A stretch of DNA of 64,000 nucleotides, from contig NW_026782056.1 in the NCBI RefSeq assembly GCF_031769215.1, positions 496,001 through 560,000 on the forward strand, written 5' to 3'. Under the pieces are notes generated by a model. It was given only the letters and a program-made list of their open reading frames with translations. It searched no databases and had not been told where the DNA came from. Positions within the stretch are counted from its first letter, which is position 1. Every line of letters starts with the position of its first letter. Positions 39,405-62,230 of the stretch are shown one piece after another. A program made the translations under genes and the position numbers. The stretch is from Ylistrum balloti. Taxonomy: Eukaryota.

Positions 39405-39537
39405 CTACGTTTGTTTTGTGGGGTTGACTTGGGGAACCCCTGGTAGTATTCCGCTATTACAGACGAGGCGCTCACAACAACCGTTCGGATCCTTTTCTAG
39501 GTGACACTCGGAAGGCGTTGAGGTCCATCGTGGGCAT
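39405..39537 (-). CDS. Exon 21: VWC-like second half and stop
   Basis: aatag|A TGC CCA..: CPRWTSTPSECHLEKDPNGCCERLVCNSG...TKQT*. The phase-2 join gives ATA (Ile), and the CP..C..CC..C pattern completes the domain. Confidence 0.85.
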
Positions 39538-42500
39538 CTATTGGTTACAAGACGAGAGGGATAAGTATCAAATCCACAAAAATTAAATGGTGGTTAATCA
39601 ATCCATCAAACTATCATGCTAATGTTGTTTAACTTGTCTTCAACTATTAATGAAAATTAACTTTGCAGTATTACACAAATACTCAAAAGATGATAAACCA
39701 TGGTTTTACATTAACGCGAAAACACAAAGTTTCTGTCCACGTTCTATAGTACGGACAAGCGAATTGTCAAATTTTCGAGGCAACTTGCCCCTTTATCAAG
39801 ACACAAATATTACATGAATTACATCACCTACACAGAACATAAAACAAATACATAGTTATCAATTTAGATCGAGAGCGGTTGTGTAAATTATGGTGTCGCG
39901 ATAATGCCTTCGACCGATGGAAGCCGGAGGCCCTTTATAGCGGATAAAAAACCATCCCAAGTTGTTGTATGGAAGATGGTGATTAAAATACAAAAAAATG
40001 TTTTATATCAATCTCGGAATGTTTTGCACTGTAGACACTAAGCGCATATATGATTGCATGTCACACTCCGTGGAAAGTAGTCTACCGGTACATCTCGGCC
40101 ACATTGCATTGTTTTATTATAAATAATCATAATTTATTGTAAAAAGTTGTAAACTGTATATGCAGTTACAATAAAAAGTGATTTGATGAAANNNNNNNNN
40201 NNNNNNNNNNNNNNNNNNNNNNNNNNNNNNNNNNNNNNNNNNNNNNNNNNNNNNNNNNNNNNNNNNNNNNNNNNNNNNNNNNNNNNNNNNNNNNNNNNNN
40301 NNNNNNNNNNNNNNNNNNNNNNNNNTTTTCCGGTCATGCACAACATGTTTATTATGTCTTCAAATCATTACAACTCGCGGTGATATTTTATATTTTGATA
40401 TGTCTCGAGCTAGGAAATGCATCTCTTTAATAGAAATCTTATTTGCATCATGCGATTGGTTATCGATCTGATGTTTCTTTATTGTACTGGCTCACCAGCT
40501 AAAACATGGTTATATATCGAGAGAATAACTTTGAACTGTACTTATTTCTGAAGGTATTGAAGTGTGATTTGATTAAATCATACTTACATATCTGTGCACA
40601 CGACTGTGTTCCTTATGTTGTCCAGACATGTACATCTGACATCACATCCATCTGTATAGGTCTCAGTGAGGTTAAGATATTGGGTCTTGTATTGACAGAA
40701 TCCTGTTACAAAATAAGTAAATTCCGTCTTATGTCTGCGTCTTTAAAAATAATGACATCAAAGGAGGCTGCTTCATGATTTCCAGACACACATAGAAACT
40801 ATCTTAAGTTCTTGCAATATATATCTATGACATCAATAATAACAAATGGATAAATAAACACCATTAGTGTTACATTGGCGATATGTAAGTAGAGTTGGAG
40901 AAGACGGCCATAAGTAGGAAGTGGTGACAAAGCTTCAGATCAAAAGCGTCAATTAAAGGAAGAGAAATGATGTGTAAGTTATCAGAACAAGCTAGATCTC
41001 TCTGACGTCAATATACTTTTCTAAAAATCTTGAATGAACGATTTGTCTATGTCTTATAAGGTACTTCTGTGTTATATTGAGAACGTTTGTCGAAACAACA
41101 TGATTTAAATTGTTTTGAAATGACTACGAAAAAACAGCACGATGAGTTTACGGCTAAACCTATGTAGGCAAATGTAGTGTTATTGATGACCTCGACTTGT
41201 ACAGTATCGTTACAGTGCCTAAAGATTTGACTATAAGCATGGTATCAATACTTTATATTAGTGATTAGAAATATATCATTTCCATTAGAGATGCTGCTAC
41301 ATCGATCTTAAAATCAAAACCAACCACAACCCAACGTAAACCAGTTTTGAGTATAAAATGCCGATAAGAGCAGATTGAGGTTGTTGCGCTGGAGTCCAAG
41401 GGAGGACCTCAAGTGAGAAAATCAAGATTATTTATATTGAAATTGATAACGAACTCCAATAAATATCATTATATGATAATACTATTTACCAATACAAGCA
41501 TGATCGACGCAAACGCATGTAAACTATTGCACGATATTTTTATCAGACAAACGAACGACTAACGCCATAACACCAGATGCATCTTACACGTATGTTTGAG
41601 GGAAACAAGGAAAACTGACTTACCAGGCTTGTCCGAAGGAGGTCCCTCGTATGTATGTGACAAAAGCTGTGAGGCGGCAGTTAAGTTTCCGGATGTTGGA
41701 GCAAGATTCGATTGTTTTGAAGGAGCAAACGGTTGTGTTACAGCTGTGTTGAAGAAAGACGGACATAAATAAATACGATGTTTTCTACCAAATAGACTTT
41801 GTGTACAGACGGATAAGAACTGTGATGTGGTATAAAATTCGAAACGAGGAAACAAATATCTGCTGGCAGAACATTCCTTTTTAAAGCGATTTCTGAACTC
41901 AGTCGTGAAATTAGTTAGACGGTTAGACAACCGTCAAAAATATTTATACTGCAAGGATACTACAGCAATGGCGAAATTAAACAAAATACATTTTTCACTG
42001 CAGATTTAGAATGAATACAGTAGAGCCAAATACTAAGATAGACCACATCATAGGGCTGTGCTTTTAGCGCTCATCAGTGATGCTAAGTACTTGCATTGTT
42101 GAAACCAATGAAGCGACACAGGAAAATCTGTGTAGGTCTCATAATATAAAAACTACATAAAGCAGATAATTGGAAGCCCTATCTCTAAATTCAGTCGATT
42201 ACATATTTTTCGATAAGATATTTAAAAAAGTGAAGATCCGTTTATTCTGAAACATGTTACCACATGGATGAATGAAAACTTTGCATACAGGTTACGGCAA
42301 ATCTCAGGGACTACAAGTCCAGCACTGTTCACTAAACAACAGTAATATAACACCTTTCAATACAAACTAAATGGAAGATGTCATCATTTAACTTTTTTAT
42401 ATAAAGTCCAAGTTTTGTAAAATCACAAAAGTTTTAAAATATCGTTCTTGTGTTCAGTGAATTCCCCGTACCAAATTATGTAAAACATACATTTACTAAT

Positions 42501-45500
42501 CCCTTTAAGATTGTGTCTGAACTTTAAAATCGGTGATAATGAACAATTTCATGTTTGGAAGTATATTTGCTGGTAGTGGAATACCAAACAGGACACTACT
42601 GTCTCATCTCTTGGCCTACATAGCTTTGGTTCCATTTGAGGTTGGATTTTTTGCATGAAAAAAGAAAGTGCGTTATAGGGTTTTCTTAACGGAAGCAGAT
42701 AATGTCAGAAAGGAAGATTTGTTGACAATTTCACACAAAAAGGAACGTGGCAACAAAGGAAATGTTTTATATTTCAACAAAGAAAGAAAATGATAGGTCA
42801 ACCAATACGGAACCGCGTTATTCATTCCAGTAAACGGAAGGGGATGATAAGGAATGACACTTACAATGAATATATATTCAAATATAAGATGTAAACATAC
42901 CGGTACCAGTAGTATTCCCGGATCCAGGAACACTTGATGGTCGCACGGGAGCTGTGAGACAAATAATACAGTCGTACAGTACATGTATATACATAATTAA
43001 AACACAATGATTCTATTTATCGATAACTTGACATTCATATTTATTCAGAGATAAAGGATGGTAATAAAAATAACAACATTCTATGGTTTTCATGACGATC
43101 TCAATTTCCTTTATAAATAAAATTGTATTCCACTATATATTAAGCAATTTGCTGTCGACATACAGAAGGACTTCCACTCGTTGCAAACGCTCTTACGTTG
43201 GAACCTATTCTATTTTCTTCCATGATAAAAAGTTTAATGTGTCTAATGATAGTTAATGTTAAGTGTCATTTGGAGACATACTATGTAATTCCACAAAGGA
43301 ATTTGTATACTTTTATGCTACATACCTCCACATAAGCTGCAAAACGATTTACAGTTTTCCCTGGCGAAGCCTTCATAAGTTGTACACAAATCCTCTCCGT
43401 ATTCCTTACAAAGAGGATCCTTGTCTGCGCAAGCCTCTAGTTTACCTGATGAATCAAATTTATTTGTAACAACACTTGAACTTTGAACACTTTCCTCTTA
43501 TTCATCAATCGCTTACCTAGATTTATTTTACAACGACACTAACAGGGACAACTTTCGCCCTGGTGCATAATTAACGTAATGATTTCATTTTATCTATTGT
43601 GAATTTCCATGTCTGGATGTGCTTGTTCCCAGCATCACGATTTTCGTTCAAGATGTCGGCAATCTGCAGGGACAATCATAGCAAAGTTTGGAGTGATGCA
43701 AGTTGATGAAAACTATGAGTATTTTTTATGAATGATCTCAGTGAGAAATATTTTATTTCTTTGTGTAATATGAAGGTGGACATGTTTTATGCTCGTTAGT
43801 AAACCTAATTGTTCTGCTGTTGTTGCTAACACGGATTAATAAAGATTTACATCGCGGGTGTAGTCGATAAAGCAGAAGACGTTTATCCTTCCGAACACCT
43901 GGTCGTATTGTCCTTGCCTTATTTAGGATTAAGTTTGATATTGTCTATCAAATTTATATCAGTTTCACAAATACATCCAACAAATAGTTATTAAATTGAA
44001 GAGTGATATTACATAACACTGCGACAGACTGGAACAATAAAATTTAGAATACAGGTTTGTATAGATAAAGAAATGAAAAGGAAACACTGCAATCAGCCGT
44101 TACTAATGAGCGACAAATTCTTAATAATATGTCGAGATAAATTCAAATGTCCCCATAAAATGAGGCAGGCACAAACCCAAACAGTCCAGACGCGCACAAT
44201 CCTGTGTCTGATCAAAACACTTGACCGAATTCTGAATCACGATTTGTATATCAAAAAGTAAATGAAAGGAAAAAAGACGTCCAGTACCGGTAACGAAAAT
44301 TAACACAAAAACTCTTATCTGAATCCAGTATATGAGAACTTCTAGGAAATTAGTATTTAGAAGTAAATAGTCATTTATAGTCGAAAGTGAGTTAAGGAGG
44401 AACTGTCCTTGAATGTTATAAACGAGGACAGTGGAGGAAGAAGCGAGTACATTCCCTTACAGGATGATCACAATTACTGGCAGGGGTGTTAACTACATAT
44501 GTAGATGAAAATTAATAGAATCTGATTTCAAATAACTAGCAGATTTTATAACGCTAAGGACGTCATTGTGGGAAACCGACAAGAGCGATATACATTTAGA
44601 CATACATTTAGTGAGGGACTGGTGTCATACTGGTAGAGTTACATCAAAAAGTCTATAGTCTCGAAGAGAATAATGATAATGTTATTATTTATAAAAGGCT
44701 GTTGTTGAAAATCCTAAAAAAATGTTTGATGCAAATGTCTTGGTTTCATATTCAATTTGATATGATCAATATTATATTCTATTTCACCGACATATGACAA
44801 AATGAATAAACACTCCAATGTCAGGTAACCAGGTTAAGACGTTCATGATTAATCTTCCCAATGTCATGTTACCGGGTTAAACATGTTTGATTAACCCTCT
44901 TAAGGTCATGTTACCTTTGACAAACTATGCCAATCGCTCTATTAGATATAAACAGCCTCTAATAAATTTACCAATTACATTCCTTAGAGCCTTGATTAGG
45001 ACAACTAACGTAAGGAAGCACTAAAACATAGAATTCAGTGCGAAACCACGCTTAATACATAAAACATCTTCATGTTACCTGGACAATATCCACAACGGAG
45101 AGCACAGTTACGTCTCGCCCAGGCTTCATAATCACCGAAACATGAGCTATCTGGGAAGTAATCACAGTCGGTTCTGATGTTTCTGCAGTCAGTTAATAAA
45201 CCTGAAAACGATACATATAGTATCATATTAAGCTTGAACTTACGTTGATGAATTAAAACATCTCCAGTAGAACACGGAAATAAAGTTATCTGTTCAGAGC
45301 ATCAACATTGTTAAATATCATACGTATTTTATTGGTCTCTTTTGGGGACAGAAAATATCAAAGACAATGTATAACGTACAATTGAAAATTCAAAACACTT
45401 ACTCTGCATGATGGGATCTAGAGTGGTGCTAGGAGCTTGAGTGGTTGGTGGAGCAATAGGATCTATAAAATACACCAACATGAAATAAGTATTTTGTACA

Positions 45501-48500
45501 AAGGAACAAATTAAGAATCAAATGCATTAGAATCAAGTGACATAATAAACTGCATCAAACAGCTATTTCGTCCCTCTGTGACTCGTCGTTGCTGAACAAA
45601 CAACATTTGTCTAGATAAGTTAGCCGTTCTGTAAAAAATAGACACCATGGCTTATGGCGAAAAGAAAAACTGAAAATAACAGAATATGTTGGCAGAAATC
45701 ATTTCAAATCTATAATCATCATAATTTTTCAGTTGCTTACTATTGCAATCTCTTAATCTACTCCAACCGTTAGAAAGAACAGAAATAAAATGAAATAATG
45801 AAAATGCAAATCATATGTCACAAAGGATTAACTTAGTAATGAACATACTTACTGTCACACAGTTTACAGAAAGCTCGGCAGTTGTCCTCTCTGAAAATCT
45901 TAAAGATGGGATTGGTACACAAGTCATCGTTGTACTCATTACAATTTGACAAGGTGTCCTGACATGGAGGAGGTGTTGTAGGGGCTGTAACATTCACAAA
46001 AAAAGTTCATTGACTACGATCAGAAGTATGAGATACAAAGCGCAATAGGTATGACCAATAAGTCAGACAAAACGTATTGAGCATGATCAGAAGTAAAACA
46101 ATTGAATATGATCAGACGGCAGACAAGGCTTATTGTGTATGATTAGAAGTAAGACAGACTAATTGAATATGATCAGACGGCAGACAAGGCTTATTGTGTA
46201 TGATTAGAAGTAAAACAATTGAATATGATGCAGACAAGGCTTATTGTGTATGATTAGAAGTAAAACAATTGAATATGAGACAAGGCTTATTGTGTATGAT
46301 TAGAAGTAAGACAGACTAATTGAATATGATCAGACGGCAGACAAGGCTTATTGTGTATGATTAGAAGTAAAACAATTGAATATGATCAGACGGCAGACAA
46401 GGCTTATTGTGTATGATTAGAAGTAAGACAGACTAATTGAATATGATCAGACGGCAGACAAGGCTTATTGTGTATGATTAGAAGTAAGACAGACTAATTG
46501 AATATGATCAGACGGCAGACAAGGCTTATTGTGTATGATTAGAAGACAGACTATTGTGTATATGATAAAACAATTGAATATGATCAGACGGCAGACAAGG
46601 CTTATTGTGTATGATTAGAAGTAAAACAATTGAATATGATCAGACGGCAGACAAGGCTTATTGTGTATGATTAGAAGTAAGACAGACTAAAACAATTGAA
46701 TATGATCAGACGGCAGACAAGGCTTATTGTGTATGATTAGAAGTAAGACAGACTAATTGAATATGATCAGACGGCAGACAAGGCTTATTGTGTATGATTA
46801 GAAGTAAAACAATTGAATATGATCAGACGGCAGACAAGGCTTATTGTGTATGATTAGAAGTAAAACAATTGAATATGATCAGACGGCAGACAAGGCTTAT
46901 TGTGTATGATTAGAAGTAAAACAATTGAATATGATCAGACGGCAGACAAGGCTTATTGTGTATGATTAGAAGTAAAACAATTGAATATGAAGACAAGGCT
47001 TATTGTGTAATTGAATATGAATCATGATCAGACGGCAGACAAGGCTTATTGTGTATGATTAGAAGTAAAACAATTGAATATGAAGACAGACAAGGCTTAT
47101 TGTGTATGATTAGAAGTAAGACAGACTAATTGAATATGATCAGACGGCAGACAAGGCTTATTGTGTATGATTAGAAGTAAGACAGACTAACCTTATCGAG
47201 TTTGATCAGAAGGAAGACAGACAAAACGTAATGAGTATGCTCAGAAAACAGACAAAACATATTGAGTGCAATTAGAAATAAGACAACTAAGCTTATGGTG
47301 TATAATACATACATAAACCCTTGTTCGCATCACTGAAACAAATACCACCCAATACGCATTAGGGTAATTATACAAATGCCAAAAAATAAGCTGATGGGCG
47401 ATTGTTTACCTATTTAAAGTGCCATATTGAACCATATTGAAGGAGACAATATTTTGTTAAATATATCAAAGTAGGTTATTTCAAGTTGTCAGAGATGATT
47501 TGTGACAGGAGTTCCTACGTTTTTAATTTAGAAAGGAGTTCTAGATAGCTTACTCTGTGAGATCATTCGTAAGTTGTGATTACTTATCTAAATATATTGT
47601 TGATGTAACAATGGTTTGTTTACATTCAGTGCTTAATTGTTTACACGAGTTCGAATTCATTGTTGGTGGGGAGAGGGGTTCATTCGGTATTTTTAAGAAA
47701 AATTCTTACCTCCGCAGAATCCACAGAATTTGCGACATCGAACTTCAGCCCAGGGTCTGTATGGCCCCTCGACACACACTTTATCGAAACCGTATTGTCG
47801 ACAATTTGATAATTTGTCTTCACAGACTAAAACAAATCATCAAATATACAATGAAATAATATTAAAGTTGGAAATGAATGCATAAAATTAATTAATAACT
47901 AGGTATATCGGGTATAATAACAGTCACGGGAAAAAATGACATTTCAGCACCAAAATCAGAAATCTTTCCAAAGTAACAATGTATTTGTCCACTTGGCAAT
48001 GATTCTTCATTTGGAAAATAAAAATCAACCGAATCACCTACTTACCTTCCGTGACACCTGCAATGGTAATGTCAGAAGTGTCATACTAAGATACTTACAT
48101 GCAAGACGAAACATCTTATTCATTGTAAGAAATAACATATTGCAAAGCCATGATAATAAATTATCCCGACAAAACACATATCATTTCATTTATATTTAAA
48201 TATCCTGACGCTGTCTGACGTCAGAACTTAATATATTTACTGTAATTATATTTGAATACACACACACGTTATTTAAGGGTAAGTGTAAATGCAAAGTGAT
48301 CCTGGAATAAAACAGTGTGGGTTCATGTTCCTTTTTGTCCCCAATCGTGTGATTTAATGTATGTTATACATTGTAATTTTAGCCAATGAACCGGCATTCA
48401 AACATCCTAAAAGTAAATATTATGTAATTGTCTACAAAAACAGATATTGTCAAGATTCGTCACGTCATACTTGTCACAACCTTCCACAAACGTGCCAGTA

Positions 48501-51500
48501 CTAAGGACCAAAGTGTCAGACAAACTCTATTTTATCACGAGGCTAATTGTTGGAAATTCGAACATTTTAGAAAATAGTCAATCAATTATACAGAAAGTTT
48601 GACAGATGATAAACTTAATTAAGATAGGAGAGAGTGAGAAAAGGAGATAAGATAAACGAAAATATGTAGCAAGCTCAAAATTCATCAAATTCATATTAAT
48701 CCTTTATCATCAAATGTGGAAATCACAAATACCGGCATTAGTTGTTACAGAGGGGCCAGTTGAAGTAGGTGGTACTGTAACAGGACCAGCTGGTGTCTCA
48801 GACGGAGGAACTGTGTCCGGTCCTGAAGAGGGTCCTGTGACTGGTTCTTCTGTTGTTCCTGTCGCAGGTTGTTCTGTGCTTCCTGTGGCTGGTACTTCGG
48901 TTGATCCTGTCGGGAGTTGTTCTGTACTTCCTGTAGCTACGACTTCAGTTGAAACCAAACCAGGTTGTTCTGTTGTTACATTAACTGGCACTAATACAAT
49001 TTATAAGAAAAAAAATCTATAGAAAATATCGCAAAAAAACATTAGTTCGATTTACGTTATGAATTTTTATGATTGGGCATTTAAGTTCTGTAAGCACATC
49101 TTCATAATCAAAAGTTATAGGGAGTGAACTGCATATGAAATAAGCAATCCAATACACACATTGATAACTAAAATTGAAGAAAGATATATGACTCACCACT
49201 GGAAACTGATGGTGTTGGTACACCAGAATCTGTTGTCAAATCAGGTCCATTTGAAGGTGTTGGTACGCCTGAATCTGTTGTCACGTCTGGAACTGATGGT
49301 GTTGGTACGCCTGAATCCGTTGTCACGTCTGGAACTAGTGGTGTTGGTAGGCCTGAATCTGTTGTCATGACTGGCCCATTTGAAGGTGTTGGTACGCCTG
49401 AATCTGTTGTCAAATCAGGTCCATTTGAAGGTGTTGGTACGCCTGAATCTGTTGTCAAATCAGGTCCATTTGAAGGTGTTGGTACGCCTGAATCTGTTGT
49501 CACGTCTGGAACTGATGGTGTTGGTACGCCTGAATCTGTTGTCCCACTAGGCATTATTGAAGGCGTTGGTATGCCTGAATCTGTTGTCATGATTGGACCT
49601 GATGGTGTTGGTACGCCTGAATCTGTTGTCACATCTGGCCCATTTGAAGGTGCAGATACGCCTGAATCCGTTGTCATTTCAGGTCCATTTGAAGGTGTTG
49701 GTACGCCTGAATTTGTTGTCACTTCTGGTCCATTTGAAGGTGAAGATACACCAGAATTGGTTGTCATTTCTGGTCCGTTAGAAGGTGCAGATACGCCCGA
49801 ATCCGTTGTCACTTCAGGTCCATTTGAAGGTGTTGGTACGCCTGAATCCGTTGTCACTTCTGGTCCATTTGAAGGTGAAGATACACCAGAATTGGTTGTC
49901 ATTTCAGGTCCGTTAGAAGGTGTTGGTACGCCTGAATCCGTTGTCATTTCAGGTCCGTTAGAAGGTGCAGATACGCCAGAATCCGTTGTCACTTCAGGTC
50001 CATTTGAAGGTGCAGATACGCCTGAATCCGTTGTCATTTCTGGTCCTTTTGAAGGTGAAGATACGCCTGAATCTGTTGTCACTTCAGGTCCATTTGAAGG
50101 TGCAGATACGCCTGAATCCGTTGTAATTTCAGGTCCATTTGAAGGTGCAGGTGTTGATAACCCAGAATCTGTTGTGTTTTCTGAACCGCTGGGTGACTCG
50201 GTTGTAACGTTATCAGTTGACGGAGCCATTTCGGTAGAGGTGGGACCCATTTCTGTTGTAGTTGGGGTTTCAGGGGGAGATTCGGTTGAGGTTGCTGGTG
50301 GAGCCTCGGTAGAAGTTGTCGTTGGAGGGGCAGGCCCTTTTTCGGTGGTAGTTTTTACTGGTCTGACTGGAAACGCTAAAACATTTTAAACATATCGTTA
50401 ATAATCAGACTTCAAACAGCAGACAACAACATTTAAATACGAACGTTGGAGGAGGTCTGCTGTCTGTGATAAATTTAATATCATCTGATTATATCATTGC
50501 TTGTTAAAAGGAATATTTCATTTCTAGTTTTGAATTTGAATTCATCCTAAATTTGTATCAAAAGGTGCTATTCACTTGTATGTTTTTTATGTGTTTTGTA
50601 TGTGGTTTAGAAAACTTGCGGTTTCTGGCGTAAATATTACCCGTTCATTATAACACTCAATCAAATTAAAAGATGTTCTTCGCTTTACCTGGTTCAACTA
50701 TTTCCGCGCCAGTTCCCTCATTTTCGGGGGAGGGAAGTGCTGGAGGGGGTTCCAGAGTAGTAGGCGCCTTCGTGGATGGAGGACTCTCCGTGCTGGTCTG
50801 GGTGGTAGGGGGTTTCTCTGTCATAAAGCCATTTGGTTCTGCTCCTGTACCGGCTTGCCTCTTCAACGCTTGATTCAATTGATGATAAAGTTATAACTAT
50901 TTTATAATATTATACACGGGCAGAGCGTCAACGATTACTAATACATGAATATTTTTAGTATAAAGTATATGAAAAAAATAAGAAATACCGCCATGCTATT
51001 CAAAAATAAAACATTCTTTTTCTATAAAGGTTACATACCTACGTTTATAACCATTGAACGTACTAATTAATGTATAATCCTATATAAACATGCTTCACGA
51101 ATTAGTAAGAAAATAAAAAAAAAAAAAAATGAAATATCCTTACTCGTGACTGCTTCACCTAATTTTATTTTAATTAAATAGATTTATTTTTATCATTAAA
51201 AATTCATATAGAAATTATTTCAAAAATAAACTTCAAGATATTTTAAATAGCATCGAACGATCGAGCGAATATCACATGGGGTAAGTGTGGTGTTTGTACA
51301 TTGAATTCGACAAAGACGATTGTCCTTAGTCACCATACAGAGTTCATCACTTCAGACCCGTATCATCTGTGACTTTTAAGTACGGAGCACTATTTCTTGT
51401 TCTGTTTTACAAGTGCACAGTTTCTATCTTTCAATTTTATTGAGAGGTAATATTCACTAAATGCATGTATCTGATCCGCTCTTTGTATATCGCAGTCACA

Positions 51501-54500
51501 ATTAGGCCTAACACTCATTATTAAAAAGGTTTTTATCACATAAACACTACAACCTTTCCAAATAGTGATATCCAGTGGGATTTAATATATCTTAAGTTTA
51601 CCACATTAAGAATAACTATATTCTGGTCTCATGAAATAAAATCATTAAAAAATAAAATTTGTTACCATTTCTAATATGTAGAGTTGGTAAAAATCGCGGG
51701 TATCTAATTTCGCTACTTTCCCAATGATCAAAGACAGCGCGAAATCACATTCGAAGCAATCATTTGACGGATAATCATAACTCAGGAAATGTATGTTTCC
51801 TGTATAACCAAATAGCAATGTATTGACATTGACACAAAACTTAATCCTGGTGAATTAGCCCAAACTATAATGACCGCGAAATATTAGCCAACGAAACTGT
51901 AAAAAATAAATAAGTAACCCAACATGTACATATTGTTTTGAACATATAGAGTAAACACTTCAAAACACTTCTTAAATATAATCTGAACACTTATATATCT
52001 CGCGTTTAAATTTCAGATATACTGTATTGCATTGATCATTTTCTAGGCATGTTAATGTAGTATGGCTTTGTGAGATAGTTTTGTTCTGATTTCATGACTG
52101 TTTTAATGTTCTGTATAAGGTTTACTTACATCGCAGAGCAGGAACATTTCTCTTTCCGGGAAGGTTCGGTACGGCGAATCCTGAAAACAAGAAGAAAATG
52201 TATTAAACATAACCACTTTGTAAAGAAGGGTTTATCTTTAACCCTAAACAAGGTCTCTTTGAGTGTCATAACTTAAATAATCAATGTTTGCTAACACACA
52301 CGCGAGCAGCGATTTGATATACATTCTAATTGCTTCAGTTATGACCTCACAAATTCTTGGTGTATTTAATGGGAAGGGAATCTGTTCTTATCATACTGAA
52401 ATAGCAATACAATCTCCATAGTGGAATATTCGTTTACGGATCATGTGGGATTAATGAAATTAATCTATTTCATAAATTCATTTCGCATAGTATCAGGACA
52501 ACGAAATAATGAAGCTTTTATTGTAGGTCTGCTAACGTCAGAATAACAAGATCACAGAACGCAAATGAATACTGGCACGTAAGTCTATGTCCGCAAATGA
52601 GAGTGGATAGTAAAAGAAACTAATTCGAAGAAAGGTTAAAAGTATCTGTAGGTTATAAGGTATCACCATATAATGATGTAGAGGTTTTAAAAAGAAGTTT
52701 TTTGTAGTTGATCAGATGTGAGCGCAATGTGAATGTATTTAAGATGTTAAGTAATGGGTTAGATATTATTGTCCATCTGTATATCGATATAATTAGCGTG
52801 TGTCATCACACAAACTGTTCTTTTCTGGAAAATACTTACAATTAATGTATCTATTGGTAGAAGTACACTGGTCATTACAAAACATTCAATGTTGATGTGT
52901 ACATCAAAAGATTGCCAAATGAATACAAACGTGAATAACATTGAAATAAAATTGATTTGTAAACATCACCGAACAAGCGAGATCAGGTATGCTTTATTAA
53001 GATTTCGATACAAATGCTTTTGAAGATGACCCAATTGATTAATGAAGAATTACAAGTAAACACACCAATTAGGCAATATTTCTAATTTTAAAATAAAGCT
53101 AAATTTGTTAACGTCAACAAGCAGCAGGTAAAAAGCTTGATATAATGGGTTGTCAAGCAAACAGTTCAAATAAAGCTGGATACATATCGTTCATCAAGCT
53201 AGCGAAGTGGATTACATATAAAAAAAGCTCGTTGTACAGGATCAAGAATACTTTTCTAAAACAAAGCTATTCGTATATGGTCAACAAATATATTACAATG
53301 CTCACAAGAAAGCCTGAAGAGTAAATACCAGCGATTTGATGATTTGTTACATGTAACTATTGTAGGTATCATTTCTAAGACATATTTTCATCACCACAAG
53401 GGGCAATATTTTAAGTATATATATTTGATACTATGTTGACATTTGGTGGAATGTTTGCTAGTAATCAAGGGGCAAATAGCCGAACAGGATAACCTCGTCC
53501 TGCGAAGTCACTAAGCATTGCCATGAACCAAGTAAACAGCGCCAACGTCATAACATCAAAAACGTATTGACAGCTTTTTAGCCAATCAGTTCACAACACA
53601 ACGTTGCTTCACAATATGATAAAAAAAGGACCAGCATCTCAAAGCGGCATCATTTAATAACATAGCTAAGCAGCAGGATCCGAGTCGATCATAAAGATGG
53701 ATGTTGACCTGGTGCTGATGTTGCTGGGATAGGATTGTTAAAAGACGGCGTTACAGCACCCGTTCCTGAAAACACAATCTATAGGTATCAGTTTCTAACA
53801 CATGTAATATTTCATTTACGAATTACTTGAATGATCTTTCTAATGCTATCAGAATATATCGGAAATGCCATGGTTACTTTCAGATATAATACGGAGTTTT
53901 AGTGATAACAATAAACTTATGACAGTAATTGCATATTTAGTGAAGCGCAAAGCAGACTTACCTATAATTCACAAGCTGCATATCCAGCAATGAGTAGCTT
54001 AATCAATAAGTTAGCGGTTACCATGAGAAATGCGCGCGATTACAATTAGAAGCAAAAACCTGTTTGATCTTCCATCACAATACCCGTAAAGGCGTAAAAT
54101 GACAGAAGTTCTTAATTGACTGAAATAGCGTTTGGATTAATTTTTTTTGTATTTATATAACCGCTCTCAAATAAATAATAATAACATAACACTTATTCAA
54201 TTAATCAAATTTCAATCATTCATAGACCAAATAACATTCAAATCACACAGTACTTGTAAAATGATATGCATGCCATACAACTGTAAAGAACACCAATACA
54301 ACTACACCAACGGTACGGCGTAATCCACGAAAATAGCTGTACAAACATACCGACAAACAATACATCTCAGGATATAACAAAAACGTGAAACCATACACTA
54401 TCTCTACAGCAAAATCAACATCATACAACACTTTAATTATATACATTTCATTACAAGCAACACAAAAGTATATATCGAACTGCAATCACCATAAAAAATC

Positions 54501-57500
54501 TAAAATTAAATAACCAACAGATATGTTATCAACAAGATAGTATAAACGCTATTAACCAAACAATATAAAGCAAATCAAATCCATTACAGAAATATTGTAG
54601 AGCTAACAGTATTAACAAACTCCAACACACAATAGAAAATACAACACTGTAATATTGTGTAGCTTATCATAAAACAAGACTCCATTAAATTATGTAGCAA
54701 CTTTATTTAGGTAACTATATAAAAAAAAACACCACACAGGCTAAAATAACTTTAAGCCATCAAACCACTTAATAACCTTTAAAAATGTAAATAACAATAT
54801 CAAAGAATTTAAAACCACTTAAATAAACACTCCGTCACCAAACAAATACATTACTATTTCATCCATAAATTTCTATACAAAATTCCACGCTAAACAATGA
54901 AAACTCATGACATTAAGATCAACGATTTACAAACAATGGAAAGCCATACCACTACAACATAAACAGTAGAATATTGTCAGGCACAACTAACGATTTAAAA
55001 ATATAAAACATACAATATGATATAAATCTACCAGGAAAAGTTATGTACCCAGTACAAAACTATATATTGTAGCTCACCTCCGCTACCGCCACAAAAGCCA
55101 CAGTGTTTCCTACAGTTATCCATGGCCCATATATGGTACTGAGAGTCTGTACAGGCTGATTGTTCATACTGATCACAGCTGCTGATATTGTCGACACAAG
55201 CTGGTGGAGGGGTTGGCACACCTTTCAATAGGACATGTGATATATATGTAGTCTATTGCTGATATATAAAAGTAACCCTTTCTCAGATGGGTCCAAATAA
55301 TAATAATTATAATGCAAACACTTCCCCAGAATGACACACAATGGACGCCATCGATGATTTGTAGATTCATTGTAGAAAAAAGAAAACAATATCCCAACTG
55401 CTATTCAATAACTCCTTTATAACTTAAGGTAAAAAAAGTGATTTTTTTCAAATGTGTTATATTTCTGCTTTAGGTGATCTTCTTGGAATTTGGTGAACTG
55501 ATAATGATTTGTAAGTGATTCTGAACTCCCCTATTGCTGCAAGGAAACTTTATACGCTTTCCTTTGTCTCCTGTTTCTCTGTGTCATATATTTTGCACCA
55601 ACGTCCTATGAAATATATTTGAAATGCAAAATGTTTTCAACGGCTGCCTACGAAATCGATTAGGCTAGGGGCCGCTTGTTTTAGGGATAAGAATTCTTGA
55701 TTATATGTCAATGAAAGTTGAACTGCATAGTCGGTAATGAAACAAAAACAAACTCACCAGCACAGAATCCACAGTAATTCATACAGTTCTCTTTAGCCCA
55801 GCCCTTGAAGTTACCCGAACAGGAACTCTGGCCGTATAACCGACAGTCCACCTTGTCCACACATTCTAGACATTGGGAAAATATCATCTGTATTTATCAC
55901 TATAACCGTTAGAAAAATCGTAAGGCTGATGGTATGAGAATGGCATCAAGTTGTTTATTTGTTATCATTATGTTATGTTGACAAATTTGATACAGAAATA
56001 GCTAAACCTTCAGTGTGAAAAATGAAACATTATGACATTCATATATTGTTGTTGACATATTTTAACATATTCATTGTTCAGACTGCCACGTTTCCCTATA
56101 ATTTTGTCTAATAAGTATTTTTTATTAGGATGTAATATATAAATGTGTTGTAAACACCAATGCCATTAACTTATTATTTTCAATATATTGCTGAGGAACT
56201 CTTACGAAATTAAAAAACCTTCTGCGTGTTATAAAGAAAGAAGAAAGTTTTTAAAGATTACCGACGTGTACGGCAAATTCAAAAATTAACTTCAACACAT
56301 TCGATGTGGACTATATACGGAAATTGATCACGATAAGTAAAACGCACAAAGTTTACACAGTACTTACTTTCGGGTGCGATAGTCGTGGTCATTAAGTCCG
56401 CCATTTGAAGTTGCTGAACTGTTGAAAAAAACGATATCATGTTACTCATTCATATTCTGTTCACTTTTCCTTAATTGATTGTGAAGTATTTAAAATGTTA
56501 TTGTCAAATTATAGCGTCAATATCAGTCGGTGTATTATGTACGTTCAAGAAGTTAGGACAGTATTGTTGTATTTACTGAAAACGTCCGTCAGTAAACAGT
56601 TGTACATGTTTTGTTCAAGATTGACCCTGCATGCAAATTCCCGATACCAATTCTAGATAGTTTTTCCTAACAGCTACGGCTAGGTTGTACCATGTACAAA
56701 CTCGTACATAAAAGTTCTCATACCATGTTTGGCAAATAAAGGAATTTATAAACTGAAGAAAAAAACTTTTCAATGCTTAACACAACCGTACATTTCAACA
56801 ACAAACATCGAAGTAGATATAAACATCGTCCCCTTTTCATCATGAAATTTAAGGACAAAACAAAATACAAACTGTCTTGTAATGATACAATATTATGAAA
56901 TAACAAAGCTTGCGTCATCCTGTTTTCAACACCTTCACATAAAACTGGGAATCAAAGAAAACAATAAACGACGCCATCATAAAGCGAGTATGTAAATCAC
57001 ATCTCCCTCTGATTTCAACACTTTTCTTAATATTTTCAATATATCCCTGTACAATTTCAACATTTTCCTCTAAAAGTTCAATATTTCCTTCAACATTTCC
57101 CTCTACGTTTTCAGCATTTCCCTCTTCATTTTCAGCATTTTCCTCTACATTCTCAATATTTCCCTTTACTTTTGCAGCAATTCCCTCTAAATTTGCAGCA
57201 ATTCCCTCGACATGTTAAACATTTCCCTCTTCATTTTCAACATTTCCCTCTACATTTTCAGCATTTTCCTCCACATTTTCAATATTTCCCTCTACTTTCC
57301 TTCTTCATTTCAACATTTTCCTCTACGTTTTCAGCAATTTCCTCTACACTTGCAGCAATTCCCTCGACATGATCAACATTTCCCTCTTCATTCTCAGCAT
57401 TTTCCTCTACATCCTCAATATTTCCCTCTACATTTTCGACATTTTCCTCTACATTCTCAATTTTTCCCTCTACTTTCCTACTTCATTTCAACATTTTCCT

Positions 57501-60345
57501 CTACGTTTTTAGCAATTTCCTCTGCATTTGCAGCATTTCCCTCAACATTGTCGACATTTTCCTCTACGGTTTAAACATTCCCTTTACATTTGAAACATTT
57601 CTTATTGCATTTTTATCGTTGTTCTCTGCAATTTCAACATCTTCATCTGAATTTCCGTAATTTTCTTTGCAACGCCCCTTTTTACATTTGTAACATCTTC
57701 CACTACATATGGTCAACACTTATTTCTACATCATCAATGTTGCTCTCTACATTTCTAACATTTACCTCTATATTTTCCTCATTTACCTGTACATTTGCGG
57801 CAGAAATAACGACAGTTTTCCTGGGCCCATGTTCCATACTGAGGGTCATTACATACGTTCTGTCCGTACGCCTCACAGTTCTGAAGCTTGTCCACACAAG
57901 CTGGCGCGGGTGTGGTCGGGCCTTCAAACAACGATCAATCAACGATGTTAGGTTTGAGATGATTCAAAATTGGCAATGAAATACAACTGTCACTATAAAG
58001 ACAGACTATTGTGAAAATAACGAATTTGTAATGCAGAAAAAACACACTTTTTTACTTCGAAGTTTTGGTAGAGTCACAAGAATATGATACTTATAGTGCA
58101 TTAAGTTGAAATGACATATTGCTTACCGTTACAGAATCCACAAAAGTTACGACAATTGTCTTGAGCCCACTTGTCGTATGGAGGTACACATGACTCTTTA
58201 CCGAATGCCACGCAGTTCGCTTGTTTATCTACGCAATCTGTCATTCAAGCAGTGCATATTTATAGACTTACGTAACTTAACTATTTAGACAAGTTGGAGA
58301 AATACAAATTGTGCAGATATATTGCAAAACAAATATCAAACATCAGTAACTTATAACATCGATAACCTCATTCATTTAGCATATCAATCTATTGAGTAAA
58401 TACTGATACAATAATGTTATATAACATGCTATCAGACTAGATAATTCACCCTAACCAATACACATTACGGAGAATTCAGAATCATTTTATCATTTTTCGA
58501 GTCTAGAAATGTACCTTCATGGCTCTGAATTTACTTCCTCCTTCCTCAAAAGTTTCTTTGTTTCTATTTGTTTCTTACATTGTTTCTATTTGTTTCATGC
58601 CAACAGCAAATACAACAATAGCCTAATCCCGATTTAATCTCATATTAAGTGTTACAATAGGTTTTGTCAATTATGAAGTGTCTATGTATGGATTGTTGTG
58701 AAAACGATGAAAACAACAAAGTAATCAACACCAACGATACATGCAAAGGCACAAACCACATGCATATACATCCTGAAATCGTCGCGACTTTTTACCTTTA
58801 CTCACCTTTTATGAAAATCCTCTTTTTTGTGTAAAAATCACGTTTGTTTCGACTTGGTTTTCTTTGCGTCACCAATAAAGCGAAAATCCCGAAAGACAAT
58901 TCACGGGAGATCACCCGGTGATCATGCGCGACACACGAGTCTGATAAAGATCGAGTTTCTAAAAGCGCGGTAAGAAATTTCACATTTAATACAACCACTT
59001 GACAAACAGACACATATCCTATCACCACTGTACATAATGACACCATGCTGGCTTATATGGGATTTCTATATTAAGTCTGAGTTCACAGGAAAGCAACATT
59101 CCTTGCGAAACCATATCTACAAATAAGACAAGAGTGTAAGTCGCCCAAAGCGTAATAAGCAATGATCGTCAACAGTGTGGCGTTTACCAAATGAAGTACA
59201 TTATGTATTTTCCTGTTGACAAGTTATTTTATACATTGTAGTGGACCTGAGATTACAATAGGGTGATAAACTTTAACTAAAACAAGATGTAAGAAAAGTA
59301 TATGACATTGACCTCTAGTCTAGATATCGGTCTTTTTAGAGCAAGTGATAAGAGACACAATGTAGAGGGCAATGTATACATCATTTCCGGTAATGACCTG
59401 ACCACCGATTTAACACGTATTCAGTTCAATTTACTCTTTTTTTTCATCATGAAATTGCATCATTTTCTGTTAACACTTGTGTTATGAAAATTGTTCATTT
59501 AAAATTACTTTTCGGGATTTTCTATCAGTCAAAATAATAGCTTAAGTTACATCCAGTCATTAAGGTGAATTTTGTTATAATTTTGGAAGCATTGAATAAC
59601 TCGAATTTCTTGGGAACATGTTTCATCAAATAGAGGAATACGATTTCGAATCAAGCAAGGTTTACTGTATATTTATCTACCAAATTTCTGTAAAACCTCA
59701 TCACGACTTTATCACTTTATTACTTTATTAGTGTCACGAGCATATGTTCAATGTTCCAAAAGATAGCTACTTTACCTTACACAGCTGTTATGCTCGATTA
59801 TGTCATTACAATTGCTACCCTTTGCTTTCAGGTCCGATACAATGGGACAATCCGTGATTTTTATTTCATTTTAAAATATTTCTTTGGTTTATATAAGAAA
59901 TTATATGCCATGTCCTATACTAACTTACAGACGATTGGTGATAATGGTAATTCTATACACGACATTTATTTTCTAATTTATTATTATTTTCTTAATACCC
60001 TATGTCAATTCAGACGCCACATGCTGTTTAACAGCTTACGCTGATTCACTCAATACTCAAGTAAACTGGGGAAAGTCAGAATTTGTTAGCAAGCAGGAAA
60101 GCGAAAGCAGATCATACACCTGTCACCAATATTTTCAATGAAAATGAACTCTAAATATTGAATGATGAGAAAACTGATAGAAGAACTATTAGCATACTTA
60201 TATCTACTCCGCCACTATTCAGTTGAGGTGCTGGCGTCTGAGTTCCAAAAAACAGCGAAAATCCACCATCGTCTCGTTTGTTGTCGGGAGCAACAGCAAG
60301 CGTTCCCGCTAAACACAAAACAGAGATACACAAAAAGGACAACAT
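39405..60345 (-). CDS. 21-exon gene for a secreted protein: 8 ShKT domains, a mucin/Ser-Gly repeat region and a C-terminal VWC-like domain (1134 aa predicted)
   Basis: The hand-assembled exons all have AG/GT boundaries and compatible phases (19 phase-1 introns, last intron phase 2). They sum to 3405 nt, from ATG at 60345 to TAG at 39405, with no internal stop. Domains were recognised from cysteine spacing. Confidence 0.85.
40192..40325. other. Assembly gap (134 N)
   Basis: Run of N inside the last intron of the ShK gene. Confidence 0.99.
40588..40702 (-). CDS. Exon 20: VWC-like domain, first half
   Basis: aacag|..FCQYKTQYLNLTETYTDGCDVRCTCLDNIRNTVVCTD..|gtaagt; C-x-Y...DGC..C-x-C..C pattern; ends in phase 2. 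Confidence 0.85.
41624..41743 (-). CDS. Exon 19: S/P/T-rich linker
   Basis: tctttcttcaacacag|VTQPFAPSKQSNL...GPPSDKP|gtaagt; 120 nt. Confidence 0.8.
42901..42951 (-). CDS. Exon 18: linker
   Basis: tttgtctcacag|PVRPSSVPGSGNTTGT|gtatgt; 51 nt. Confidence 0.8.
43326..43445 (-). CDS. Exon 17: ShKT8
   Basis: atcag|..KLEACADKDPLCKEYGEDLCTTYEGFARENCKSFCSLCG..|gtatgt; 120 nt. Confidence 0.93.
43851..43918 (-). repeat. Dispersed repeat family A, copy 4 (core, intronic)
   Basis: The minus strand reads GACCAGGTGTTCGGAAGGATAAACGTCTTCTGCTTTATCGA. Confidence 0.6.
45079..45201 (-). CDS. Exon 16: ShKT7
   Basis: ttttcag|..LLTDCRNIRTDCDYFPDSSCFGDYEAWARRNCALRCGYCP..|gtaaca; 123 nt. Confidence 0.93.
45403..45462 (-). 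CDS. Exon 15: linker
   Basis: ttttatag|PIAPPTTQAPSTTLDPIMQ|gtaagt; 60 nt. Confidence 0.85.
45853..45984 (-). CDS. Exon 14: Pro-rich linker and ShKT6
   Basis: tacag|..PTTPPPCQDTLSNCNEYNDDLCTNPIFKIFREDNCRAFCKLCD..|gtaagt; 132 nt. Confidence 0.93.
46084..47190. repeat. Intronic 56/61-bp tandem array, about 19-20 units
   Basis: Unit AAAACAATTGAATATGATCAGACGGCAGACAAGGCTTATTGTGTATGATTAGAAGT, with a variant beginning AAGACAGACTAATTG. Confidence 0.95.
47710..47826 (-). CDS. Exon 13: ShKT5
   Basis: ttttag|..CEDKLSNCRQYGFDKVCVEGPYRPWAEVRCRKFCGFCG..|gtaaga; 117 nt. Confidence 0.93.
48046..48057 (-). CDS. Exon 12: 12-nt microexon (GVTE)
   Basis: ttaccattgcag|GTGTCACGGAAG|gtaagt; phase 1-1. The frame is kept whether or not it is included. 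Confidence 0.6.
48733..48990 (-). CDS. Exon 11: PTS-rich segment
   Basis: gtattag|PVNVTTEQPG...SVTTNA|gtattt; 258 nt. Confidence 0.85.
49197..50375 (-). CDS. Exon 10: mucin-like exon with 22 x 14-15-aa repeats
   Basis: gttttag|FPVRPVKTTTE...(TDSGVPTPSNGPEVT)n...SVSS|gtgagt; 1179 nt open frame. Confidence 0.9.
50689..50868 (-). CDS. Exon 9: KR site and PTS-rich segment
   Basis: aag|LKRQAGTGAEPNGF...EIVEP|gtaaag; 180 nt. The acceptor choice is uncertain (alternative CAG with exon start at 50844). Confidence 0.75.
52130..52180 (-). CDS. Exon 8: GKR-containing linker
   Basis: ttttcttcttgttttcag|GFAVPNLPGKRNVPALR|gtaagt; 51 nt, with a strong acceptor and donor. Confidence 0.8.
53709..53765 (-). 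CDS. Exon 7: linker with a weak donor
   Basis: gtgttttcag|GTGAVTPSFNNPIPATSAP|gtcaac; 57 nt. Read-through reaches TGA at 53689-53691. Confidence 0.7.
55078..55221 (-). CDS. Exon 6: Pro-rich linker and ShKT4
   Basis: aag|..VPTPPPACVDNISSCDQYEQSACTDSQYHIWAMDNCRKHCGFCGGSG..|gtgagc; 144 nt. Confidence 0.93.
55758..55865 (-). CDS. Exon 5: ShKT3
   Basis: tag|..CVDKVDCRLYGQSSCSGNFKGWAKENCMNYCGFCA..|gtgagt; 108 nt. Confidence 0.93.
56368..56418 (-). CDS. Exon 4: linker
   Basis: ttttttcaacag|VQQLQMADLMTTTIAPE|gtaagt; 51 nt, phase 1-1. Confidence 0.8.
57030..57785. repeat. Degenerate ~21-bp pyrimidine-rich intronic repeat
   Basis: Motif CATTTTCCTCTACATTTTCAG/CAA with many substitutions. It explains the FQHFPLH-type ORFs and fades out at the exon 3 donor. 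Confidence 0.85.
57787..57921 (-). CDS. Exon 3: Pro-rich linker and ShKT2
   Basis: aag|..PTTPAPACVDKLQNCEAYGQNVCNDPQYGTWAQENCRYFCRKCT..|gtaaat; 135 nt. Confidence 0.93.
58127..58237 (-). CDS. Exon 2: ShKT1
   Basis: cag|..CVDKQANCVAFGKESCVPPYDKWAQDNCRNFCGFCN..|gtaagc; 111 nt. Confidence 0.93.
60198..60345 (-). CDS. ShK gene exon 1: signal peptide and KR site
   Basis: MLSFLCISVLCLAGTLAVAPDNKRDDGG...VDI; in-frame stop upstream of the ATG; donor A|GTATGC, phase 1. Confidence 0.8.
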
Positions 60346-62230
60346 AATTTGTTCGTCGAAATTGACAGGGATCTACACAGTACACCGCACACTGTAGACC
60401 GACCAATGCCGACTACGAAAAAGGACAGGATTTTTAATTCTTCAGTGCCACCACAGCTTACTAGGGCGAGCGATAAGATAAGGAGGCGCCACCTGTCGGA
60501 TTCCCGAACACAAACCAAACTTTGGTGGCTGTACGATATGACACGGTCATCGCAGACTTGGTGTTCTGATGAATTTAGGCAAAACTGGGGCCATATATTA
60601 TTTGAAATACGGTTTTAGTCTGTGTACTTAAAATCATATCAATTATTTAGATGGTCGCGCAACCAGAATGATCATAAATAAGCATAGTCACTTCCGAAAT
60701 ATTACAATTCAATGTAGAATTATCATTTGTCATAGAATAAACCATGGTCATAATTTGTTTTCTGAATTTGGAAAAAAATAAAAAAAAAAAAAAACAATCA
60801 TTGAAATCATCAATTTTGGACAATGAAAGCGAATGAATAGGATTAATCGTGAAGAGAACGAAGGCATTATTGAGTTTAACTATGACAATAACAACAAATT
60901 AACGAAAAGTTCAATGATGTACTTGAATATTATTTTTAGAAATATAAAGTAATATTTAAATTATCCCTATAACTAAATTCATTTTTGCGTATATATTCTT
61001 ATTGACAAAATTTGAGTATAAAGCTTGTTACAAATATGGTATGCGTCTCTTTGAGTATGGATAGATTAATTAGGAAAATATATGGTTTAGATTTTATGAA
61101 GTTTTCATCGACAAAAACAGAAACAAAACAAATCAATAAAAAAACTCCCAAAAAAACAGAATCTTCATTTTAGCTTGAGGTCGATATAACGCATTGCTAT
61201 TTGAATTTTTTTGAGATTTGAAAATTAAAGAATTAACATCTTTAATTCAACAAAGTGAGGACCGAAACCAGATATTTTGGAACACGTGGCCTAACAGTGG
61301 TAATGACGTTATCAACCGTCGTACATCGTCGTCTAGTTATCTACTGCACCGAGAAGTCATACTGACTGATTTTAACTTGTTCTTTCATATGTCCTTGATC
61401 ACTTCACAATTCTACACTTCCATTGATTCCTCGGCTGACTTCTCTCTCAATAAATAATATTCTCATTGATGTACTCTCATTCTTCTTTTAACCATCTCCT
61501 TTTCCTTTCTTATGGTCATATGTTTAATTTTTTTCTTTCCTGTGATTCCACTTTTCCATTCCATACCACGTACCCGTCTTATTATTTTGATTCTGCTATT
61601 CAAGTCCTGTTTTCGATACATTCTTAACCTGTACTTTCCTGTTTTACTTTTTCATCCTGACCATGCTCTGTATTTTTCGTCACACATTCTTCGATATATA
61701 ATGCAATTGTATCTGCATTAGTGGAAGCAGTAAAGATATACAAAGAAAAATAATAATACATCACAATACAAAATAATGAACAATCGATATGAACATTTCC
61801 AAACTGTGTTCAAGGAAATGACTTGTGAAGGGGTAAGCACTCATTATCATTACTTCTCTATCATCTTGCTTTAAAGCTACTGCCTCCAGCTACCAGAAAA
61901 TGCATATTTTCATTGTCTTCTTCTCTAGGAAGCTGCGTGATGGACGTGCTCAAAATATCTAAAATCTCTTGACAGCATTCATCTGTTATGCTTACCGATT
62001 AAATTTAAAATTTACCCCGCCCTAACTGCTCAACTTATATCCGTTTCCATAATTCCAGTCCTTTCTATCTTCTCTAGATATCCTTCACCATCCAACTCCT
62101 CTCCCTCTCTTAATTCATGTCTGTACCCTTTCTACCTCTTGTCCATATCCCTAACTGTTGAACTGTTGATGTCAAACTCATCTGTCACTCCCTTAATCTC
62201 AGCCCTATCTACCTCCCCCCCCCCCTCCTT

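Follow-up and report, generated by a model that had tools for sequence, protein, structure and literature searches.

The stretch of DNA analyzed here (the window) comprises 64,000 nt of the genome of the scallop Ylistrum balloti (contig NW_026782056.1, positions 496,001 to 560,000). On its minus strand, from 60345 to 39405, lies what we consider with good confidence to be one intact protein-coding pectinid gene, encoding a 1130-amino-acid secreted modular glycoprotein precursor. The window is AT-rich (approximately 34% GC) and contains a single run of N, at 40192-40325. We found in it eight stop-free, exon-sized minus-strand frames with the six-Cys spacing of ShKT modules (at 58.2, 57.9, 55.8, 55.2, 47.8, 45.9, 45.1, and 43.4 kb), three Thr/Ser/Pro/Gly-rich frames between the two groups of ShKT frames (50.9-48.7 kb), and two Cys-rich frames downstream of them (40.7 and 39.5 kb).

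Exon boundaries were obtained by scoring AG and GT sites, which placed a phase-1 acceptor and a phase-1 donor on almost every exon, and a core of 14 exons alone formed a stop-free frame of 997 amino acids. A profile of the eight ShKT exons was searched first, and its best full-length relative then served as the query that recovered the Pecten maximus protein XP_033756389. When this protein was compared with the window by tblastn, all segments were collinear and six extra small exons were revealed (51, 57, 51, 60, 51, and 120 nt). The final model has 20 exons and 3,393 nt, encoding 1130 amino acids with one terminal stop. All 19 introns have AG/GT boundaries, and all are in phase 1 except the last, which is in phase 2. 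The product consists, in order, of a signal peptide (assigned by eye from a hydrophobic core and a T-L-A motif), four ShKT modules, a 539-amino-acid Pro/Thr/Ser-rich (PTS) region, four further ShKT modules, and a C-terminal VWC domain with 10 Cys. Its 60 Cys are fully accounted for by the signal peptide (2), the ShKT modules (48), and the VWC domain (10). An earlier note on this DNA had proposed one gene with this same domain order, which the joined frame and the Pecten collinearity bear out. It had counted 21 exons and 1134 amino acids; the single stop-free frame with canonical boundaries stands, while the count is revised by a micro-exon of the AVLTPQI type. This optional micro-exon (6-7 amino acids) is present in Pecten and in isoform X3 of Mizuhopecten, and we found no convincing candidate for it between 55078 and 53766.

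Two cDNA-like Logan contigs from a related scallop (P0174; 82% protein identity), L001 (SRR18313975) and L002 (SRR18313977), were also compared with the model. The features of the locus are as follows, with E-values for the Pfam ShK profile and identities to the Pecten protein where these apply.

60198..60345, minus strand: exon 1, with the ATG at 60345 and a phase-1 donor after 60198, encoding the signal peptide (MLSFLCISVLCLAGTLA), a propeptide specific to scallops with KR at its end, and FSLFFGT, the conserved N-terminal motif of the mature protein
58127..58237, minus strand: exon 2, ShKT1, phase 1-1, E 7e-5, 82% identity
57787..57921, minus strand: exon 3, ShKT2, E 2.9e-6, 91% identity
56368..56418, minus strand: exon 4, 51-nt spacer mini-exon (VQQLQMADLMTTTIAPE) between ShKT2 and ShKT3
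55758..55865, minus strand: exon 5, ShKT3, E 0.006, 92% identity
55078..55221, minus strand: exon 6, ShKT4, E 9.5e-6, 72% identity, skipped in the Mizuhopecten short isoforms X3/X4
53709..53765, minus strand: exon 7, 57-nt linker (GTGAVTPSFNNPIPATSAPG)
52130..52180, minus strand: exon 8, 51-nt mini-exon (FAVPNLPGKRNVPALR) with a conserved P-G-K-R site
50689..50868, minus strand: exon 9, in which the second dibasic site lies (SLKR-QAGTG) and the PTS region starts, 88.5% identity
49197..50375, minus strand: exon 10, 1179-nt PTS exon with approximately 21 copies of the 15-amino-acid repeat TT(D/N)SGVPTPSNGPEV
48733..48990, minus strand: exon 11, PTS tail with 8-amino-acid repeats of the TGSTE(Q/V)PA type and a weak donor, CCG|gtattt
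47710..47826, minus strand: exon 12, ShKT5, E 2.3e-6, 88% identity, matched by contig L001
45853..45984, minus strand: exon 13, ShKT6, E 1.4e-5, the L001 match stopping exactly at 45853
45403..45462, minus strand: exon 14, 60-nt linker (PIAPPTTQAPSTTLDPIMQ)
45079..45201, minus strand: exon 15, ShKT7, E 0.013, the L001 match beginning exactly at 45201
43326..43445, minus strand: exon 16, ShKT8, E 0.0014
42901..42951, minus strand: exon 17, 51-nt linker mini-exon (PVRPSSVPGSGNTTGT)
41624..41743, minus strand: exon 18, 120-nt linker before the VWC domain (…LTAASQLLSHTYEGPPSDKP), placed by Pecten collinearity and a cDNA contig
40588..40702, minus strand: exon 19, N-terminal half of the VWC domain (FCQYKTQYLNLTETYTDGCDVRCTCLDNIRNTVVCTD), with a phase-2 donor; 85% identity
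40192..40325, no strand: assembly gap (N), intronic, between both VWC exons
39405..39537, minus strand: exon 20, C-terminal half of the VWC domain (CPRWTSTPSECHLEKDPNGCCERLVC) and a short tail, with the stop at 39405-39407
39329..39353, minus strand: AATAAA/ATTAAA cluster 55-75 nt past the stop, likely the polyadenylation site of the gene; the L001 match ends at 39337

The junction of exons 1 and 2 (...GGVDI-N-CVDKQ) matches ...GGIDINCVDKQ in Mizuhopecten and ...GGVDLNCVDKQ in Pecten. The spacer encoded by exon 4, which places 17 amino acids between ShKT modules 2 and 3, is kept in Pecten, Mizuhopecten, Mytilus, Mactra, Mya, Dreissena, Crassostrea, and Haliotis. Two minisatellites were seen in introns of the gene, one between ShKT5 and ShKT6 (46100-47184, units of 56-61 bp) and one between ShKT2 and the spacer mini-exon (57089-57601, units of 42-63 bp).

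The assembly gap is contained in the intron of 1050 nt that separates exon 19 (40702-40588) from exon 20 (39537-39405). The joined VWC halves read ...NTVVCTD-I-CPRWTSTPSEC..., equivalent to ...NTVVCTDVCPTWTSTPSEC... in Pecten with zero residues missing, and the two halves are directly adjacent in both contigs of the related scallop. Because of this agreement across the exon 19/20 junction, the gap is intronic, the frame across it is intact, and no coding sequence has been lost.

Comparison with relatives indicated that the gene is under constraint. Over codons 808-1127, the proportions of nonsynonymous and synonymous differences from the related scallop cDNA were 0.105 and 0.71, respectively, the latter being saturated, which corresponds to a ratio of nonsynonymous to synonymous substitution rates (dN/dS) of approximately 0.05. 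Identity to Pecten is 80-84% in the domains (84% for the first group of four ShKT modules, hereafter the first tetrad, 83% for the second tetrad, and 80% for the VWC domain), 83% in the linker that carries the KR sites, and 58% in the PTS region. As judged from these comparisons, the domains are under strong purifying selection and the gene is functional, its mucin core evolving fast, as is usual. A pseudogene was ruled out by the intact frame together with the dN/dS.

The eight six-Cys domains recognized in the earlier note were all confirmed as ShKT modules. Each of the eight exons matched Pfam PF01549 (ShK) over the whole profile, with E-values from 2e-6 to 0.013, and five exceeded the gathering score singly; the Pecten orthologue matched the same profile in 7 stretches (83.8 bits). 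In the alignment of the eight modules the six Cys columns were invariant, with the spacing C-x5/6-C-x7/8-C-x11/12-C-x3-C-x2-C in every module. A Pfam run on the full-length Pecten orthologue, used as a proxy for the joined 1130-amino-acid protein, returned ShK only, in agreement with the view that no catalytic domain accompanies these modules. The Lys-Tyr dyad between Cys3 and Cys4 was found in none of the eight aligned modules. Since this dyad is missing, we infer that the ShKT modules have binding or structural roles rather than acting as channel-blocking toxins. The missing dyad has likewise been counted against toxin function for the Toxocara mucins and a limpet mucus protein (PMC7333891). 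One could alternatively picture the modules as ShK-type potassium-channel-blocking or defensive toxins, displayed on mucus or released from it, a reading to which only the fold and the Pfam family lend themselves. The lack of the dyad in all eight modules and the wide retention of the family under purifying selection in non-venomous bivalves make it highly improbable, and the ShK-type toxin was set aside as a candidate on the missing dyad.

The joined exons 19 and 20 read FCQ...DGCDVRCTC...VVCTDICPRW...ECHLEKDPNGCCERLVC, with ten Cys that include C-x3-C-x-C and CC-x4-C. In an alignment of 26 relatives, nine Cys columns were invariant and the tenth was occupied in at least 90%, and the consensus (C..YKG..Y..G.TW.DGC.Y.C.C...C...CP...C...PG.CC...C) is that of a textbook VWC domain. 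What speaks against this assignment is that neither the window exons nor the Pecten domain gave a direct match to Pfam PF00093 at E up to 1. However, 23 of the 26 aligned relatives did match PF00093 (best E 9e-7), and the family profile matched the VWC domain of CCN3 (5nb8) over its full length with an E-value of 6.9e-9. An AlphaFold2 model of the Pecten VWC domain, which is 80% identical to that of the window, had a predicted local distance difference test score of 84.9, and its top Foldseek matches were CCN3 5nb8 (template modelling scores 0.64/0.67), NEL 9oz8, and collagen IIA 5nir/1u5m, with modest E-values of 3e-3 upward. The scallop domain shares with the VWC domains of CCN3/NOV, collagen IIA, and NEL/NELL (chordin-like Cys-rich) the ten-Cys pattern with C-x-x-C-x-C and CC motifs, but has lost their G-x-x-W signature and reads ...LTETYTDGC instead. 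The terminal VWC domain of the earlier note is thus upheld by the family profile and the predicted fold, as a divergent member that lies beyond the direct reach of PF00093. On several other contigs of the same genome (C743, 135-190 kb; C179, 1.846-1.906 Mb; C102, 1.337-1.399 Mb; C728, 360-402 kb; C947; C339; C442), we also observed clustered ShKT exons, with dozens of weak matches to the two VWC half-exons scattered among them. These are probably giant VWC-repeat/ShKT genes, similar to those predicted in gastropods, such as Gigantopelta XP_041376878 (4135 amino acids, approximately 31 VWC domains) and Haliotis XP_071091672 (2067 amino acids).

The PTS region spans residues 269-807 and lacks Cys altogether. 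Thr, Pro, Ser, and Gly make up 19.7, 18.0, 14.8, and 10.6% of it, respectively, so that Thr, Ser, and Pro together account for 52%. A 45-bp unit present in 21.2 copies at 49207-50147 encodes the approximately 21 copies of the exon 10 repeat. By its composition and repeats, the core reads as a classical mucin-type PTS region. It had been described as a Ser-Gly mucin core; this label fits the Asp-Ser-Gly (DSG) triplet of each repeat only, the region as a whole being rich in Thr, Pro, Ser, and Gly. The triplets could nevertheless suggest a proteoglycan core, with glycosaminoglycan chains attached at the repeated Asp-Ser-Gly sites. Each repeat contributes one site, 19 of them DSG and 3 NSG, most with an acidic residue before the Ser-Gly, and TTDSGVPT, the core of the repeat, is retained in Pecten, whereas its remaining positions drift. 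Xylosyltransferase sites, however, usually have acidic residues around G-S-G or S-G-x-G, and neither context occurs here, each Ser-Gly being followed by Val/Leu/Ile and then Pro/Ser. Moreover, the high Thr+Ser+Pro content and the Pro spacing are typical of mucin-type O-GalNAc sites, and the orthologous PTS regions of Mytilus and Crassostrea are without Ser-Gly repeats. We therefore regard a proteoglycan core as unlikely and favor a mucin-type region. The protein would enter the secretory pathway, and the PTS region would be densely O-glycosylated and form an extended brush; on these grounds we infer that the product is a component of mucus or of another extracellular coat or matrix.

Whether the locus makes one long protein or several shorter ones was assessed from relatives and contigs. 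The Pecten proteins XP_033756389 and XP_033756388 align with the model end to end, with 69.6-70% identity over amino acids 1-1128. The junctions of exons 1-5, 7, and 8 agree with Mizuhopecten isoforms. For exons 12-20, the two independent Logan contigs confirm that the exons are adjacent and in this order, and the match ends agree with the exon ends to a few bases wherever nucleotide matches exist (exons 14 and 17 are matched at the protein level only). Several points count against the single long product: a search for sequencing runs of this species gave one run of uncertain, probably DNA, type and none of RNA, so that the splice junctions rest on sequence signals and relatives only, the donor of exon 11 is weak (CCG|gtattt), the Mizuhopecten short isoforms end after the PGRR exon, and the contigs of the related scallop begin in the intron before ShKT5. 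Because of these isoforms and contig starts, products with only the tetrad, or only ShKT4-VWC, may exist besides the long protein.

A stronger version of this idea would make the long model a minor form or an artefactual read-through, with the locus encoding a protein of approximately 260 amino acids (signal peptide and tetrad) that ends after the PGKR exon and an independently initiated protein with ShKT5-8 and the VWC domain. In its favor, the Mizuhopecten isoforms X3/X4 of LOC110441633 (258/264 amino acids) reach a stop 24 amino acids past the PGRR exon, stand-alone tetrad proteins of 200-270 amino acids are common in molluscs, ShKTn-VWC proteins are known as separate proteins, and L001 and L002, from two runs, begin in intron-like sequence immediately upstream of ShKT5 and not in PTS sequence. 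On the other hand, all junctions are phase-compatible and stop-free, those on either side of the PTS exons among them. The introns preceding the PTS exons and ShKT5 were searched for an alternative first exon with a signal peptide, and no credible candidate with a usable donor turned up, and in the window the frame upstream of ShKT5 reaches a stop three codons before the exon. The tetrad, the PTS region, and further ShKT modules are joined not only in Pecten X6/X7 but also in independent models from five other bivalve genera, namely Mytilus (four species, many isoforms), Mactra, Sinanodonta, Ruditapes, and Mercenaria, and the linker around the KR sites is as conserved with Pecten (83%) as expected of long-form coding sequence. 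We thus consider it doubtful that the separate products are the rule, and retain the long protein as the principal reading.

The 5′ portions of the contigs deserve mention in their own right. Positions 1-274 of L001, and the start of L002, are AT-rich and intron-like, ending in ...ttgttgatag just before ShKT5. They give an open reading frame with a hydrophobic N-terminus (MSLPELNISMIKSHLPYPLLLLLLIV), whereas the window has a stop at the equivalent position, and they may reflect either intron retention or an internal promoter from which a ShKT4-VWC isoform is transcribed. At the other end of the gene, the annotated N-termini of the Mizuhopecten yessoensis LOC110441633 isoforms X4 (P0048) and X3 (P0151) are longer by MVYCRNTCQSCRTN, which precedes the Met aligned with the start in the window.

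The earlier note had not recognized this architecture from a characterized protein; as far as public predictions are concerned it is not new, being present, to judge from predicted sequences, in the same form in other scallops and as variants across bivalves, all uncharacterized. The closest relatives are two predicted Pecten maximus proteins, XP_033756389.1 (titin-like X7, 1105 amino acids) and XP_033756388.1 (mucin-5AC-like X6, 1121 amino acids), which are collinear with the product from the signal peptide to the VWC tail and contain every mini-exon segment and both KR sites. They differ in the PTS repeat, which is a 16-amino-acid unit in Pecten (TDMTTDSGVPTQSPSG) and a 15-amino-acid unit in the window (TTDSGVPTPSNGPEV), with different copy numbers. 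More distant relatives are found in Mytilus (mucin-2-like, e.g., M. trossulus XP_063433373, 777 amino acids, at least nine isoforms), Mactra, Sinanodonta, Ruditapes, Mercenaria, and Crassostrea. These have in common the signal peptide, the QFxLxFGT motif, the tetrad with its spacer, the PTS region, and further ShKT modules; PG(K/R)R is common to all of them except Crassostrea, whose relative is short (434 amino acids). The tetrad of the window is 46-49% identical to those of the Mytilus-type relatives. The C-terminus varies, with a VWC domain in scallops, one or two ShKT modules followed by a chitin-binding CBM14 domain (PF01607) in Mytilus, and an end after the ShKT modules in Mactra. As a side observation, the C-terminal module is swapped between lineages (Mytilus P0018, P0163, P0165 versus P0006, P0009, P0169, P0170).

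The automatic names of the relatives do not fit the protein. With the gel-forming mucins MUC2/MUC5AC, the source of some of these names, it shares long PTS tandem repeats and at least one VWC domain. However, no VWD/C8/TIL assemblies and no cystine-knot domain were found by Pfam in the full-length Pecten orthologue, and all Cys belong to the signal peptide, the ShKT modules, or the VWC domain. A gel-forming mucin was thus ruled out by the lack of VWD and CTCK, and titin by the same Pfam result. Instead, the gene belongs among the ShKT-bearing secreted mucin-like glycoproteins. Literature searches by accession and for ShKT domains in mucus, in shell matrix, and in Pecten found no study of a characterized family member. 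The nearest characterized analogy, in architecture, is with Tc-MUC-1 to 5 of Toxocara canis (the TES-120 family), secreted surface-coat mucins in which ShKT (SXC) modules accompany a Ser/Thr-rich mucin domain (PMC9477421). These modules also lack the toxin dyad and are thought to be binding modules (PMC7333891). The Tc-MUC proteins are unlike the scallop protein in being nematode proteins of small size (e.g., 176 amino acids) with two ShKT modules and no VWC domain, and the homology shown is that of the domain type.

The linker between the first tetrad and the PTS region suggests that the protein may be a precursor. At 31 amino acids past ShKT4 the sequence is ...FAVPNLP-G-K-R-NVPALRSL-K-R-QAGTG, and within this otherwise variable linker P-G-(K/R)-R recurs across bivalve orders, in the scallop models, four Mytilus species, Mactra, Mya, Dreissena, Ruditapes, Mercenaria, and Sinanodonta (at least eight bivalve genera). 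The second dibasic site is (R)-x-K-R-QF(H/S)ASHHH in heterodont and unionid clams, with a His-rich segment after it. A Gly with basic residues behind it directs cleavage by convertases, trimming by carboxypeptidases, and alpha-amidation. Among the stand-alone four-ShKT proteins, which come from gastropods and other molluscs, C-termini such as ...PPMPGK, ...PPMPGRK, and a bare Gly occur; a C-terminal G or G[KR] was found in 12 of 21 stand-alone tetrad proteins versus 20 of 158 other retrieved proteins (Fisher p = 1.5e-5, the cases not being phylogenetically independent). At the N-terminus, scallops have a KR after a short extra segment past the signal peptide, and in Mytilus, Ruditapes, and Mercenaria FxLxFGT directly follows the signal peptide, so that a cut at the scallop KR would expose the same N-terminus as in the other bivalves.

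Processing might then proceed by a cut at the KR after the short propeptide, a second at P-G-K-R just past the first tetrad, leaving a Pro-amide C-terminus, and a third at L-K-R just before Gln. The products would be an amidated four-ShKT protein of approximately 235 amino acids (approximately 26 kDa of polypeptide) and a separate mucin-ShKT4-VWC glycoprotein, to which the VWC domain would give a protein-binding or oligomerizing end. The conserved P-G-K-R and the Gly or Gly-Lys/Arg ends of the stand-alone tetrads lead us to suggest such processing; weighing on the other side are the absence of the PGKR site from the Crassostrea orthologue and the effect of shared ancestry on the C-terminal Gly statistic. 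On balance, the sequence features favor the first tetrad being a processed, amidated unit, with both cleavage and amidation predicted. This would modify the suggestion that toxin-fold modules are displayed at both ends of a glycan brush: the tetrads do flank the PTS region, but the N-terminal one may be cut off at the conserved dibasic sites. A fuller version, which we offer as a possibility somewhat short of even, is that the protein is a polyprotein in which cleavage at P-G-K-R frees an amidated tetrad, an ancient molluscan secreted factor also encoded by stand-alone genes, and leaves the mucin-ShKT4-VWC remainder separate; bivalves would thus have fused the factor to its mucus or matrix carrier.

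Elsewhere in the window, unrelated to the ShKT gene, an intronless plus-strand open reading frame of 555 amino acids (24214-25881) encodes a rhodopsin-family G-protein-coupled receptor (Pfam 7tm_1, E 1.3e-69), which looks aminergic on account of its DRY motif (LDRYWAITDPIAY) and long third loop. Large minisatellite arrays, with up to 27 copies, are located as follows.

1-1869: units of 67 bp
9448-9947: units of 44 bp
13161-14756: units of 51/62 bp
17046-19887: units of 43/129 bp
31440-32188: units of 34 bp
62227-64000: units of 67 bp

These arrays explain the strong GC-skew blocks and the repetitive open reading frames at 14174-14773 and 18049-19576.

For a scallop genome that lacks annotation, the analysis provides a checked model, exon by exon, of a gene for a large secreted glycoprotein, and the gene is undamaged by the assembly gap. 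It also indicates that the automatic RefSeq names (titin-like, mucin-5AC-like, mucin-2-like, nephronectin) mask a coherent family that extends across bivalves and has a conserved four-ShKT unit as its basis. If the GKR site is used, a folded, disulfide-rich protein would be freed in amidated form from a mucin precursor, which would be unusual and would provide a handle on the role of ShKT domains in molluscan mucus, shell, and adhesive secretions, a question that the papers on the Toxocara mucins and on limpet mucus leave open for ShKT modules in general.

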